DNA of 64,000 nt from the NCBI GenBank assembly GCA_977017575.1, contig CDRNVI010000137.1, positions 62,001 to 126,000 on the forward strand, written 5' to 3'. This document shows, in pieces, positions 23,970-27,779 of the stretch; positions within the stretch are counted from its first letter, which is position 1, and each line of letters opens with the position of its first letter. The notes below the pieces were generated by a model. That model was not told the DNA's origin, ran no database searches, and was given only the letters and a program-made list of their open reading frames with translations. The DNA comes from Paramoeba atlantica. Its lineage: Eukaryota > Protista > Discosea. A program made the position numbers and the translations under genes.

Positions 23970-23994
23970 TGCCGAAAACGTGGATCGAACACGT

Positions 23995-24027
<33 letters not shown>
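23970..24027 (-). pseudogene. tRNA-Phe (GAA), 3' 58 nt; gene split by retrotransposon
   Basis: Minus strand TTGGGAGAGCGTCAGACTGAAGATCTGAAGGTCACGTGTTCGATCCACGTTTTCGGCA followed by an oligo-T terminator. Confidence 0.95.
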
Positions 24028-27000
24028 TGGGTTTCACATTCCTTTCCGTTTTCCAACATCATCATTGATTGTCACCTATCACCCCTCAGGAGCGGAGACA
24101 ACGAGGCAACTCGCGGACTTTCCCATATGACAACCAGCGGTAATGGCGGATCTCGGAAAAGGTGGACCCAGGACGAGACGCAGCTCTATGAGAAGATTGT
24201 TTTGGAAAAACCATCCATCACACCCTCTCTCCTTCAAAAACTTTATTTTAAAGATCGATCGATTAATTCAGTGAAATGTTATCATGCTAGATACAAAAAG
24301 AAACTGGAAAAACTAAACACCCGGTTTAACCTGAGTCAGAGTGAAAAAGTCAAGGTTCTCCCTGAAGCGCTAAAACCCAACGCTGGTGTCCATCGTTTTG
24401 AACGCATCGAGGCAGTCGAAGAAATTTTCGATGTCCCAAACTCGAGATCGGTTTGCCCTGAGCCTGATCCAGTTGATGCTGCAATCCAGAAAAAGAAAGA
24501 GGATATTCAATGGATCGACAGACTGCAAGAAACACCCAAGGAAGCTGCCCTCAAAGTCGCAGAAGAAACATCAGACCTCTCAAGAATCAACATCACAAAA
24601 CTCTCGAAATCCAAGTGGAAAACGATCAACCATAGACTGGATGGCCTCGAAAAACCTTTTCTCGATTGGTGTGTTGGAAAAGTCCTTTCCGAGCCTGAAT
24701 GGGAAAAGTTTGAACAAGCCCTCCATGAATTTGTGGTTCGAATTCACACTGAGATCTCGAACCAAGAGGAAGAAAATGAGAAGGAAGAAGAAGAATCAGA
24801 ATCAGAACCAGGAAGAAAGAAAAGTAAACCAAGGTGGCCAGATAAAATATTGAAAGCAAAGAAAAAGATTCGAAAAATCTGTCGACTCAAAGAAGTTCTC
24901 CTCGTGGAGATCAGAAAGAAAAGTAAAAACAAGCACTTAAGCGCAAAAGCAAGAACCTTGTTTCGAGAGACAAACCTTGGAGACCTCAAGGAAAAACTGG
25001 AAAAAACAACCAACAAGGAAGAATGGAAGAAAGTAGCCACAAAACTTGGAGGATTAAGAAAGAAGCTGAGGAAGACAAAATGGAAAGCAGGCAGAAGTTG
25101 GAGAAGACAAAATTCCAAAGACGAAGAACGAAAGAACATTGCTCTCTGGAACCAAAACCGATCTGCCTTCTACAAGAAGCTCCAATCCCAAGGGATGCCG
25201 CCTGTGAATAGTGAAATCTTTAAACTCGCTTGTGACTACTATGAGGAACAAAACACATCTCGAACCCCTGATTTTCAGACCTCATCCATCCCCCAAGAAG
25301 TCCTTGAAGTCCTCCCTTGTAAATCTCTCGGAAACAGCGCAGCTTTCTGGAATATCACAGCAGGAGATATTGCTAAATATCTCAAGAAAACAAAGGCTAA
25401 ATCAGCCCCTGGTTGGGATAGCCTCCAATATGCTGTTTGGAAAAACCTCCCCTGTACCCTCAAAGCCCTCGAATGTATCTATGACATTTGTCAGTCAAAC
25501 CAAAGAGTACCAATGACCTGGCAGATCGCGAAAGGAATCCTCATCCCCAAGAAAAAAGATATCAAGATTGGAAAAGACCTTCGTCCAATTATGCTCCAAC
25601 CCAATATCTACAAAATCTTCTCAGGCGTCCTTGGATCCAAAATTCACGATTTCGCAAAGGACAACAAGATATGGAGCGATGAGCAACGAGGATACACAAA
25701 TCTGAACGGGACAATGCTCAATCTTTCAATGATTCAAGCGGCCAAAGACAACATCTCGCGACACCGGTCCTCCAACGAGTTCCTAAGCCTGTTTGTTGAT
25801 GTCCAAAACGCCTTTGGTGCTGTTGAATACAAGCAAATGATCACCATCCTATTTGGCCTGGGCCTCCCAAAGAAGATTTGTGTCCTGATCTGGGGAATTA
25901 TGAAAGCTGGCGTCATGATCTTCTCGCATGAAAAAACAAAAAACAATGTCCCACAATCTCGAGGTGTGAAACAAGGAGATCCCCTGAGTGGAATTATATT
26001 CAACCTCTGTCTTGAACCTGTCTGGCGACTCCTCAACAAAAGTAAAATCGGATATCAGATGATTACTCAGAAAAGTGTCATACCATCACTGGGTTTCTGT
26101 GATGATATGTGCTTTAATACAGGCTCTCGAAACATGCTCCTTGACACCCTCAAACTGCTCGAACAATTCTTGAAGTGGCTTTGCCTGAAGCTTGTCCCCT
26201 CCAAATGCGCCCTCATCAAACACTCCTTCAAAGGAGACGTCCAACAACATGATGACTGGACTGTGAAGATCGATGGATCACCTGTTGAAGTCATCAAGAG
26301 AGGTGAAACAGAGGACACTCGCTACCTTGGAAGCTTCTTCAATGACAAACCAAAATCGAGCACAACAATCGAAAAACTCATCGAGAAGGTCAAAAATCGA
26401 CTGGATCTTCTAACTGCGGCGAATCTCCCTCTTCGTTACAAGATAGTCGCCCTCTCCCAGTGGGTTGCAAGCTCATGTACCTATGTCTTGCTCAATGAAA
26501 AGACGAACCTTGGCCATGTTGACCAAATACAGCTCCTCATCAACGACTCAGTCAGGTCCTGGTTCAGACTCCCCCACAACACCAACATCGAAATGCTCAC
26601 CATTGCCTTCAGCAATGGTGGCTTGGCTCTCCCAAACATCAGGAAGATGTATTATTCCCTTCAAGCAAGACGATTCAACTACCTGATGTCCAAAGAATAT
26701 GACCAAAAAGCAGTCAGCATCATTGAAGACTCTCTACTTGACTCTGCACAAGCAAGAGGCCAGCAGCAGAACTTTATTGGTAAACCTGACATCCCATTCG
26801 ACCGAGTGCGATGCTTTTGGACAGTTGCCCACGAAATTGCTCGTAAATTCTTCCCAGAGAACACCCAAGCGCTCGAGCATCTCGATGTTGATAAGATTCA
26901 GAAGATGATGGACGATAAAATCCTCAAACATGTTGAGGAATTAAAAGTTCAAGGGCAAATCCTGAGAAGCTGGAAAGTTGGTGGACACTCTAACAGTACC

Positions 27001-27766
27001 ACTCGAAAGCGATGGAACCCCAACGATCACTACCTCCGATTCTGGTTGAAAGCCTACCTGCAACAACTTCCAACAAAATCCTACTATGTTTTTACACAAC
27101 AGAAGGGTGATGGGAAGTGTCCTCTCTGCGGGCAGTCAGAAACCCAACTCCATGCCCTAAATGGTTGTAAACTAAGAATCCAAGATATGATCCATCGACA
27201 CAATCGAGTTCAGAATGTCTTCCTCTCTTTTAAATGTCTGCATCCTGATGATCTCCTTCTAATTGATAAACCGATCCCTCCACATCACTATGAAGGAATT
27301 GTCACAAAAAACAAACCAGACATCTTCATTCTCAACCATGCTCGCCGAACTATCGAAATTATCGAAATCTCAACTCCCTATGATACTAACACTGAATTGA
27401 GTGAGATCAACAAAACAAACAAATACTTCCCCTTGGTCGAAGCACTGAAAAGTCGAAACCGCACCTACAAAGTCACAATGATCCCCATTGTGATCGGATC
27501 GCTTGGTGGAATGACTTCAAACTTGCGAGGTAACCTCATCAATGCAGGAGTCCCCCCAACAAGAGTACAACACTGCCTCCGGCTTATGTTTGAGACAGTA
27601 ATCGAAGGATCCCAATGGCTTTGGAAACGACGATTTAATCCTTCCCCAGAAATGCAAGAGTGATAAAGTGGACCTTGTTGTGACCTAGGAAATCACAGAA
27701 CCTAACGTAGTATTTTGAGAATGCAAACTTTTGTTTGCAATTTATCTTTCAATAAATTGTATTTTC
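24028..27766 (+). mobile_element. RLE-type (R2/NeSL-like) non-LTR retrotransposon inserted in tRNA-Phe
   Basis: 3739 bp lying exactly between the two halves of tRNA-Phe; one intact ORF; no TSD, 2-bp target loss. Confidence 0.95.
24127..27663 (+). CDS. Myb/SANT-like + reverse transcriptase + CCHC knuckle + PD-(D/E)xK restriction-like endonuclease (~1178 aa)
   Basis: RKRWTQDET..RSINSVKCYH; KSAPGWD, LRPIML, DVQNAFGAV, GVKQGDPLS, FCDD, RYLG; CPLCGQSETQLHALNGC; RHNRV..KPDI..IIEISTP..K..KY. Confidence 0.95.
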   Translation: MTTSGNGGSRKRWTQDETQLYEKIVLEKPSITPSLLQKLYFKDRSINSVKCYHARYKKKLEKLNTRFNLSQSEKVKVLPEALKPNAGVHRFERIEAVEEIFDVPNSRSVCPEPDPVDAAIQKKKEDIQWIDRLQETPKEAALKVAEETSDLSRINITKLSKSKWKTINHRLDGLEKPFLDWCVGKVLSEPEWEKFEQALHEFVVRIHTEISNQEEENEKEEEESESEPGRKKSKPRWPDKILKAKKKIRKICRLKEVLLVEIRKKSKNKHLSAKARTLFRETNLGDLKEKLEKTTNKEEWKKVATKLGGLRKKLRKTKWKAGRSWRRQNSKDEERKNIALWNQNRSAFYKKLQSQGMPPVNSEIFKLACDYYEEQNTSRTPDFQTSSIPQEVLEVLPCKSLGNSAAFWNITAGDIAKYLKKTKAKSAPGWDSLQYAVWKNLPCTLKALECIYDICQSNQRVPMTWQIAKGILIPKKKDIKIGKDLRPIMLQPNIYKIFSGVLGSKIHDFAKDNKIWSDEQRGYTNLNGTMLNLSMIQAAKDNISRHRSSNEFLSLFVDVQNAFGAVEYKQMITILFGLGLPKKICVLIWGIMKAGVMIFSHEKTKNNVPQSRGVKQGDPLSGIIFNLCLEPVWRLLNKSKIGYQMITQKSVIPSLGFCDDMCFNTGSRNMLLDTLKLLEQFLKWLCLKLVPSKCALIKHSFKGDVQQHDDWTVKIDGSPVEVIKRGETEDTRYLGSFFNDKPKSSTTIEKLIEKVKNRLDLLTAANLPLRYKIVALSQWVASSCTYVLLNEKTNLGHVDQIQLLINDSVRSWFRLPHNTNIEMLTIAFSNGGLALPNIRKMYYSLQARRFNYLMSKEYDQKAVSIIEDSLLDSAQARGQQQNFIGKPDIPFDRVRCFWTVAHEIARKFFPENTQALEHLDVDKIQKMMDDKILKHVEELKVQGQILRSWKVGGHSNSTTRKRWNPNDHYLRFWLKAYLQQLPTKSYYVFTQQKGDGKCPLCGQSETQLHALNGCKLRIQDMIHRHNRVQNVFLSFKCLHPDDLLLIDKPIPPHHYEGIVTKNKPDIFILNHARRTIEIIEISTPYDTNTELSEINKTNKYFPLVEALKSRNRTYKVTMIPIVIGSLGGMTSNLRGNLINAGVPPTRVQHCLRLMFETVIEGSQWLWKRRFNPSPEMQE

Positions 27767-27779
27767 GAGCTATTTCGGC
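27767..27779 (-). pseudogene. tRNA-Phe 5' 13 nt (GCCGAAATAGCTC)
   Basis: Plus-strand gagctatttcggc immediately after the element 3' end; its acceptor strand pairs with the 3' fragment. Confidence 0.93.

Follow-up and report, generated by a model that had tools for sequence, protein, structure and literature searches.

The 64,000-nt stretch of Paramoeba atlantica DNA analyzed here (GenBank assembly GCA_977017575.1, contig CDRNVI010000137.1, positions 62,001 to 126,000; hereafter the window) contains an intact retrotransposon lodged inside a phenylalanine tRNA gene, tRNA-Phe(GAA). The evidence set out below makes it very probable that this is a recently active, sequence-specific retrotransposon of the type that lacks long terminal repeats (non-LTR) and carries a restriction-like endonuclease (RLE), and that it uses target-primed reverse transcription (TPRT) to insert into the tRNA D-loop (A box), always antisense to the tRNA.

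The split tRNA-Phe gene and its empty counterpart

The minus-strand tRNA-Phe(GAA) gene of the window is in two parts, split by a plus-strand element between C13 and T17. Its 3' part (57 nt, tRNA positions 17 to 73; 23970..24026, minus strand) matches intact tRNA-Phe from TGGGAGAGCG onward and gives a partial tRNA match in Rfam, and its 5' part (13 nt, positions 1-13, with the D-stem GCTC at its end; 27767..27779, minus strand) was delimited by comparison with intact genes and with an empty site. Once both window flanks are joined, ARAGORN calls tRNA-Phe. The pre-insertion sequence can be read directly at L040, an intact tRNA-Phe locus on contig C152 whose flanks agree with the window's at 99.5% on the left and 99.9% on the right, over at least 1.4 kb per side. 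The empty site reads ...CGCTCTCCCA-GCT-GAGCTATTTCGGC... and the occupied site ...CGCTCTCCCA-element-GAGCTATTTCGGC..., i.e., the whole retrotransposon (3,740 bp; 24027..27766, plus strand, antisense to the tRNA) stands in place of the 3 bp GCT, and the target deletion is 3 nt (AGC in the tRNA sense). Comparison with the empty site also reveals neither a target-site duplication (TSD) nor a poly(A) tail in the DNA at the junctions of the element.

These results bear out the preliminary description of this DNA in that a minus-strand tRNA-Phe(GAA) gene is cut in two by an inserted element with no TSD and no poly(A), and they sharpen its boundaries: the limits of the 5' part stand, whereas the 3' part is 57 rather than 58 nt long and the element 3,740 rather than 3739 bp. 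The loss of 2 nt that had been proposed relative to an AGTTGG D-loop has to be replaced by one of 3 nt, since the intact tRNA-Phe genes of P. atlantica, which carry the lost bases, read GCCGAAATAGCTC-AGC-TGGGAGAGCG (GCTC-AGC-TGGGAG) instead of the sequence assumed earlier.

Recurrent insertion at one position of the D-loop

A search of the 45.7-Mb assembly found four copies of the element, which are 98.3-99.2% identical: one intact, one frameshifted, one rearranged, and one 5'-truncated. No copy of the family was found at an unrelated site in the assembly. The intact copy is that of the window, in tRNA-Phe. The frameshifted copy (L019, contig C143) is also in tRNA-Phe and is full length and 98.3% identical to the window copy, from which it differs by 10 small indels, 9 of them inside the element and frame-breaking, and by 51 substitutions, 19 of which are CpG to TpG/CpA. 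The rearranged copy (L017, contig C149), again in tRNA-Phe, has positions 378-1634 replaced by a 3,349-bp insert. The 5'-truncated copy (L018, contig C170; 626 bp) sits in a different gene, tRNA-Asn(GTT), with the 3' junction ...TATTTTC-GAGCTAAGGAGG and an upstream junction immediately after ...CGCTCTGCCAA. Ten intact tRNA-Asn genes read GCTC-AG-TTGGCAGAGCG; the position and orientation of L018 in tRNA-Asn are as in tRNA-Phe, with 2-4 nt lost, depending on 1-2-nt microhomology. The 3' junction, ...TATTTT[C/G] followed by GAGCTA..., is identical in the tRNA-Phe and tRNA-Asn insertions. Thus, the recurrence of 3' junctions among genomic copies that had been anticipated is found; tRNA-Phe, the target supposed earlier, is not the sole one.

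The L017 and L019 copies have about 2 kb of right flank in common, 98.7% identical, and judging from these flanks they are probably duplicates of one event. The window flanks are just 78-81% identical to those of L017 and L019, against 99.5-99.9% to those of the empty L040 locus; the window copy is therefore a separate insertion event. With L018 counted, this genome records at least three independent insertions at a single nucleotide position, in tRNA-Phe and tRNA-Asn.

The insert within L017 (G000:C149:401500-409500) resembles a DNA transposon, with perfect 19-bp terminal inverted repeats (GGTACAGGCAGCAAAGTTG) and an open reading frame (ORF) of 328 amino acids (aa) on the opposite strand, and its junction is also present in one contig of sequencing run X5.

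Target motif and broken tRNA-Phe units

The D-arm pattern common to both targets, TAGCTCAG.TGG.AGAGCG, has 19 intact sites in the assembly, all of them in tRNA-Phe or tRNA-Asn genes, and the motif TAGCTCAGNTGGNAGAGCG is confined within the assembly to the genes of these same two tRNAs. Three of the tRNA-Phe motif sites belong to a second gene type (contigs C6, C10, and C58) with quite different flanks.

The window-type tRNA-Phe genes lie in a repeated Glu-> <-Phe unit, in which the target is paired with a tRNA-Glu(TTC) gene (23652..23725, plus strand, in the window). Of 14 such units, six remain intact and the other eight have a break in the D-loop, which supplies the count of intact versus interrupted genes that the preliminary description had called for. 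The breakpoints of the eight are exactly those after CCCA or after GCT, the two putative cleavage positions. Three of the eight carry this element. Three others, which are identical loci (L036/L041/L044), retain just its first 9 bases (ATGGGTTTC) and continue into unrelated sequence; BLAST of the L036-type sequence behind this stub gave no match among the sequences collected in this analysis. One unit has a 16-nt palindromic filler (...TGACGCTCTCCCA-T-TGGGAGAGCGTCA..., a perfect palindrome) together with a deletion of about 325 bp, and in another GCT is joined exactly to flank lying 216 bp further on. From the position of their breakpoints, we infer that the broken, element-free units may be scars of insertion, of abortive insertion or of later deletion.

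The element-free broken loci include L034 (G000:C143:293884-296902) and L037 (C144:161716-164734). The second type of tRNA-Phe(GAA) gene (L045-L047; GCCTCGATAGCTCAGTTGGGAGAGCGTTAG...) has GC-richer, mutually identical flanks and is never interrupted; this type may belong to another organism of a mixed assembly. Near tRNA-Asn genes, a degenerate fragment related to the element at 85-88% identity (positions 3346-3600, C-terminal coding) recurs about 50 bp upstream of intact tRNA-Asn (L005-L010 and L016; e.g., L007:1501-1881). It forms part of a tRNA-Asp<- / fragment-> / tRNA-Asn-> unit that is repeated at least 8 times and amplified whole by duplication. Their location outside an intact gene and in the same orientation as the tRNA rules these fragments out as D-loop insertions, and they may represent an older family with a different landing place. 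On either side of the window element, positions 27780-39780 and 11970-23969 form a dense repeat island. It includes a block some 7.3 kb long (window about 32420-39780) with at least 16 recurrences at 97-98% identity, and several other blocks with tens of recurrences on the same contig set.

Architecture of the element and its protein

The window copy is the sole copy in the assembly with an unbroken frame, a single uninterrupted ORF of 1,178 aa plus stop (24127..27663, plus strand; ATG at 24127, stop 27661-27663). It is preceded by a 5' untranslated region (UTR) of 100 nt (24027..24126, plus strand) and followed by a 3' UTR of 103 nt (27664..27766, plus strand), which is the same in all four copies but for the last base, C or G (alignment A2), and contains AATAAA (27751..27756, plus strand) 10 nt before the 3' junction. 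Rfam finds no ribozyme in the 5' UTR, whose fold z-score is about 0, and within 23400-28200 its matches at E<=1 are tRNAs only, although a divergent ribozyme could escape detection; the UTRs of the element fold no better than shuffled sequences.

Pfam, run on the whole ORF, gives RVT_1 as its sole match and finds no Exo_endo_phos domain of the apurinic/apyrimidinic endonuclease (APE) type. The reverse transcriptase (RT) domain so defined (aa 474-702, E 5e-22; 25546..26232, plus strand) has invariant D558 and D659-D660. From RT through thumb/linker, CCHC, and RLE, the protein aligns to the R2 structures 9nl3, 9dou (R2Tg), and 8gh6 (R2Bm) with E values of 2.5e-28 to 8e-25. The CCHC zinc knuckle (C998, C1001, H1009, and C1014; 27118..27168, plus strand) aligns to that of R2 in PDB 9nl3, and the restriction-like PD-(D/E)xK endonuclease (RHN 1024-1026, KPD 1063-1065, E1080, and K1096; 27196..27516, plus strand) to the R2 RLE, with an AF2 pLDDT of 84-90 over this part of the protein. 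In alignment A1, composed of the window protein and its four closest relatives, the RT aspartates D558/D659/D660, the CCHC residues, RHN, KPD, E1080, and K1096 are all invariant. The AF2 model of the whole protein, built from 5 sequences, had a pLDDT of 51 and was not used in the fold search.

At the N-terminus, a three-helix domain (about aa 8-66; 24148..24324, plus strand) is assigned as Myb-like with moderate confidence. In the AF2 model, residues 8-66 form three helices (pLDDT 77), and their best matches by VIA-align are the Myb-type DNA-binding domains of ARR1/LUX/PHR (Z 6.9-6.6), among Myb/GARP/SANT/homeodomain DNA binders, with the top match at Z 6.9 and a root-mean-square deviation of 1.7 A over 56 residues; a WT.DE motif is kept in relatives (alignment A3). 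No N-terminal zinc finger was found, since there is no C2H2-like pattern anywhere in the protein and residues 1-440 hold just 6 scattered cysteines. Of the Myb-RT-CCHC-RLE ORF described earlier, the last three domains are thus confirmed by Pfam and by alignment to R2, whereas the Myb assignment comes from structure.

The single-ORF RT, the CCHC and RLE without APE, and the specific repeated target are those of the early-branching, RLE-bearing non-LTR group in the wide sense (R2/NeSL/CRE/R4/Hero). The features of the R2 clade proper, i.e., 28S sense insertion, N-terminal zinc finger(s) plus Myb, and a hepatitis delta virus (HDV)-like 5' ribozyme, were not recovered, and Pfam finds none of the NeSL/Utopia accessory domains (C2H2 fingers, Ulp1 protease, RNase H) in the window protein. 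The earlier label "R2-like" is therefore valid for architecture only.

Two further observations concern the 5' end. Upstream of the ATG, the frame of the ORF meets no stop for 121 codons (window 23764-24126), a stretch that spans the 5' UTR, the antisense part of the tRNA, and a spacer rich in A; it may be due to chance. In addition, two contigs of run X5, of about 30-fold higher depth, share just a 30-36-nt piece of the 5' UTR (window 24089-24124) and diverge on both sides of it; in the assembly, this segment is found in three element copies only.

Relatives and a candidate tRNA D-loop clade

In a word-indexed search, identity was about 44% for four relatives, of which two lie on short metagenome contigs of soil type and two are transcripts of tubulinean amoebae (Flabellula baltica and Copromyxa protea); after these it drops to 26%. 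The amoebozoan relatives fit an amoeba as host of the window element. In line with this, an exhaustive HMMER search of 1.84 billion representatives gave about five members at 44% or more, with the next tier at 27-28%, and a metagenome scan with alignment A1 gave no further relatives. Junctions were read for the window element, L018, L084, L085, L086, and L087; the Flabellula and Copromyxa transcripts and P0132 contribute no junctions, and the contigs of L079, L090, and L088 and L089 (the last two of a 23-25% tier) end within or at the element.

Where junctions can be read, the geometry recurs, with antisense insertion at the D-arm of other tRNAs. The 3' junction of L084 (46% identity) is ...AAATTT-GAGCTATTCGGGAC. 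In L085 (51%), an antisense tRNA 3' part stands on one side and the junction ...ACATT-GAGCCACGCAGTCG on the other, with a larger deletion; the acceptor strands of its split tRNA, GACTGCG and CGCAGTC, are complementary. In L086 (28%, from an NCBI assembly), a 3,795-bp element is placed between ...GCGTACGCTCTACCAA and AGCTATCGAACC, and ARAGORN calls tRNA-Val(AAC) when the flanks are joined. The L087 contig (27%) starts inside an antisense tRNA 3' part that ends in ...CTCACCAA at the element, and itself ends in poly(A). The end of the L078 contig reads ...AAATTTGAG. Wherever the 3' end of a family member could be read, AATAAA precedes the junction by 9-11 nt.

In a maximum-likelihood tree built quickly from 26 proteins, the window element and its tRNA-inserted relatives fall in a ten-row clade with an SH-aLRT of 100, to which neither a (GA)n-targeting element nor one that bears zinc fingers belongs; the tree is made of unnamed database proteins only and does not include named NeSL, CRE, R4, Hero, or Utopia references. 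The members of the proposed tRNA D-loop clade are the window element, P0001-P0004, P0131-P0133, and P0137-P0139, and it is characterized by monophyly, antisense insertion at the boundary of D-stem and D-loop in a tRNA gene, and AATAAA about 10 nt before the 3' end. The chances are about even that these elements represent an old monophyletic RLE lineage which has kept its antisense D-loop/A box target across distant protists (Amoebozoa of two classes and environmental eukaryotes, to about 28% identity), with a compact protein that has one Myb-like reader and, in place of host co-transcription, a self-promoted transcript with a poly(A) tail.

Outside the tRNA clade, P0006 (24% identity; L083:5480-5552, from an ENA metagenome assembly) is an RLE element with a (GA)n microsatellite at its end. 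It therefore has a different target and may be a relative specific for microsatellites.

Proposed mechanism and alternative explanations

The junctions are consistent with the following course of insertion. The element protein would recognize the conserved D-arm DNA TAGCTCAG.TGG.AGAGCG, probably via its Myb-like domain, and its RLE would make a nick between C13 and A14 in the tRNA-sense strand. This would leave C13 with a 3'-OH to prime cDNA synthesis on the element RNA, starting precisely at the 3' end of that RNA. The cut in the opposite strand would lie at a distance of 3 bp, where the complements of C16 and T17 meet. Such a 3-bp offset between the two cuts would lead to the loss of the 3 bp as overhangs. 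A 2-bp target deletion is left by R2Bm, which resembles the 3-bp loss at this site. Since the element is antisense to the tRNA, it can be neither co-transcribed with it nor carried on the RNA polymerase (Pol) III transcript. The template would rather be a Pol II-type transcript that is polyadenylated but copied without its A-tail, as suggested by the conserved AATAAA, the failure to find a ribozyme, and the L087 contig, which has a poly(A) end and extends into upstream flank.

The observed/expected CpG ratio is 0.65 in the element and 0.34 in the window, which agrees with the CpG richness reported earlier. This high ratio, the intact frame, the near-identical empty site, and the CpG-transition-rich decay of L019 together argue for a recent insertion, and the family is possibly still active. 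That the open frame is instead a not-yet-decayed remnant of an extinct, no longer mobile family is unlikely. Such a relic would fit with one intact copy in four and with the absence of evidence for transcription, but a 1,178-codon frame with every catalytic motif intact, an empty counterpart with near-identical flanks, CpG well above heavily CpG-depleted surroundings, and the 98.3-99.2% identity of the copies all speak against it. It is hardly credible that one chance insertion into tRNA-Phe, with no real target specificity, was spread by segmental duplication of the tRNA-bearing unit. The tRNA genes do sit in duplicating repeat units, as seen from the flanks shared among tRNA-Phe genes, from the Asp/Asn units with their old element fragment (at least eight occurrences), and from the 98.7% identical flanks of L017 and L019. 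However, the tRNA-Asn copy has unrelated flanks, those of the window copy match the empty locus (99.5-99.9%) and not L017/L019 (78-81%), and the same geometry recurs in different tRNAs among relatives from other assemblies. In a further explanation, the element is not guided by direct sequence recognition but tethered to Pol III factors, TFIIIC/TFIIIB bound at the A and B boxes (cf. Dictyostelium TRE and yeast Ty). The insertion site lies inside the A box, relatives use several tRNA species, and such tethering is documented for amoebozoan retrotransposons (PMC5006619, PMC6101501). We nevertheless consider it very unlikely, given that the known tethered elements integrate outside the gene, at a variable distance of about 15-100 bp up- or downstream (PMC5006619), whereas here the junction is nucleotide-fixed and inside the gene. 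Furthermore, the two tRNAs used in this genome are the only ones with the D-arm motif, and an R2-type RLE combined with a DNA-binding-like domain is the architecture of sequence-specific cutters. A mixed mode, in which sequence recognition is aided by Pol III factors, is another alternative.

Several points weigh against a recently active element that inserts in a sequence-specific manner. Its copy number is low, so that only about three independent events are available in this genome, and L040 may be either an allele or a recently arisen paralogue of the window locus. The putative nick positions are read from junctions. For the Myb-like domain, Pfam is negative up to E<=10 with the N-termini of four members of the family, no match from Foldseek against PDB reached significance, and the VIA Z of 6.9 falls in the "middling" range. 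The element occurs in the sequencing runs as contigs of unspecified library kind, which do not show transcription. Finally, a tRNA-Lys(CTT) gene of the window carries no insertion, and its D-arm is nearly identical (TAGCTCAGTCGGTAGAGCG, with TCGGT in place of CTGGG/TTGGC in the loop), although with so few copies this speaks neither for nor against fine specificity. The joined (empty) form is also present in the runs, with 24-30 nt per side only, and is compatible with any intact tRNA-Phe.

Overall, the preliminary view of a site-specific family that inserts antisense in the D-loop/A box is upheld by the independent events in this genome and by the geometry of the relatives.

Comparison with known elements

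Like R2 (R2Bm, R2Tg), the window element has a single ORF with an N-terminal DNA-binding region, RT, CCHC, and a C-terminal PD-(D/E)xK endonuclease, and it shares with R2 a precise 3' junction without A-tail or TSD, a small target deletion, and a multicopy RNA gene as target. In contrast to R2, which is inserted in 28S in the sense orientation and co-transcribed with rRNA, it lies antisense in a tRNA D-loop, has AATAAA at its 3' end, and shows neither a detectable HDV-like 5' ribozyme nor an N-terminal zinc finger; protein identity to R2 is about 20-25%.

The tRNA genes, earlier called a rarely reported target class for RLE elements, are already published as such targets: tRNA-specific families have been described in Trichomonas and planarians, i.e., NeSL-1_TV (tRNA-Pro), LIN15_SM (tRNA-Arg), and LIN25_SM (tRNA-Glu) (Kojima & Jurka 2015, PMC4640811). 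These, too, are RLE non-LTR elements at a fixed place inside multicopy tRNA genes, used as a safe site. Copies of LIN15_SM differ in position and orientation, as they precede a sense 3' part of tRNA-Arg that begins at about the anticodon arm (supplementary alignments, PMC4640811). The three families were compared with the D-loop clade by targets and, for LIN15_SM, by junctions. Another comparable group, Utopia and NeSL-1_ACa, comprises U2 small nuclear RNA (snRNA)-specific RLE elements and is present in Acanthamoeba (PMC4640811). These elements of amoebozoans and other protists likewise occupy one site in a small multicopy RNA gene, but their target is U2 snRNA and many have zinc fingers or RNase H, a comparison made by description only.

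Among amoebozoan retrotransposons, Dictyostelium TRE5/TRE3 and DGLT-A are associated with tRNA genes and target them via Pol III factors (PMC5006619, PMC6101501), and TRE, DGLT-A, and Skipper land outside the tRNA genes (PMC5006619). The window element has an amoebozoan host and a tRNA gene as landing mark in common with TRE5/TRE3 and DGLT-A; those are APE-type or LTR elements that insert about 15-100 bp outside and leave the tRNA intact, whereas this one destroys the gene at one nucleotide. Dada DNA transposons, which are tRNA/snRNA-specific, also use a specific site inside tRNA genes (PMC3706591, PMC8869645), but they have a DDE-transposase and TSDs and neither RT nor TPRT.

Reviews of R2 diversity do not mention tRNA targets, a paper on the genome of an amoeba that harbors Perkinsela as endosymbiont is silent on such elements in the host, and a literature search, with Repbase and subscription journals outside its reach, found no description of an antisense D-loop-specific RLE clade. 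Thus, tRNA targeting by RLE elements is already published, and it is the antisense D-loop position and orientation, as read from these junctions, that we did not find described.

Implications

Site-specific RLE retrotransposons are a model for TPRT and are in development for transgene insertion at multicopy "safe" loci, work that rests almost wholly on R2 and 28S rDNA. The window element offers an intact, compact 1,178-aa system with an empty site, a defined 3' junction, and a putative 3-bp cleavage offset, although the earlier suggestion of a "programmable" insertion system finds no support. Its target is short and highly conserved, the tRNA D-arm being the Pol III A box, and the motif is close to what we take to be the D-arm sequence of animal tRNA-Phe genes; the element protein might therefore recognize similar tRNA genes in other eukaryotes. 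Moreover, divergent relatives that occupy the same position in different tRNAs provide natural material on DNA reading and shifts of specificity.

For the host, the cost is visible in the window-type tRNA-Phe(GAA) genes, more than half of which (8/14) are broken at the putative cleavage positions. With this element, amoebozoan retrotransposons would have a third way to exploit tRNA genes that differs in mechanism, namely inside the gene by sequence, as opposed to beside it by Pol III tethering. If the old monophyletic lineage proposed above is real, the D-loop elements would be the tRNA counterpart of R2 in its long fidelity to 28S rDNA.

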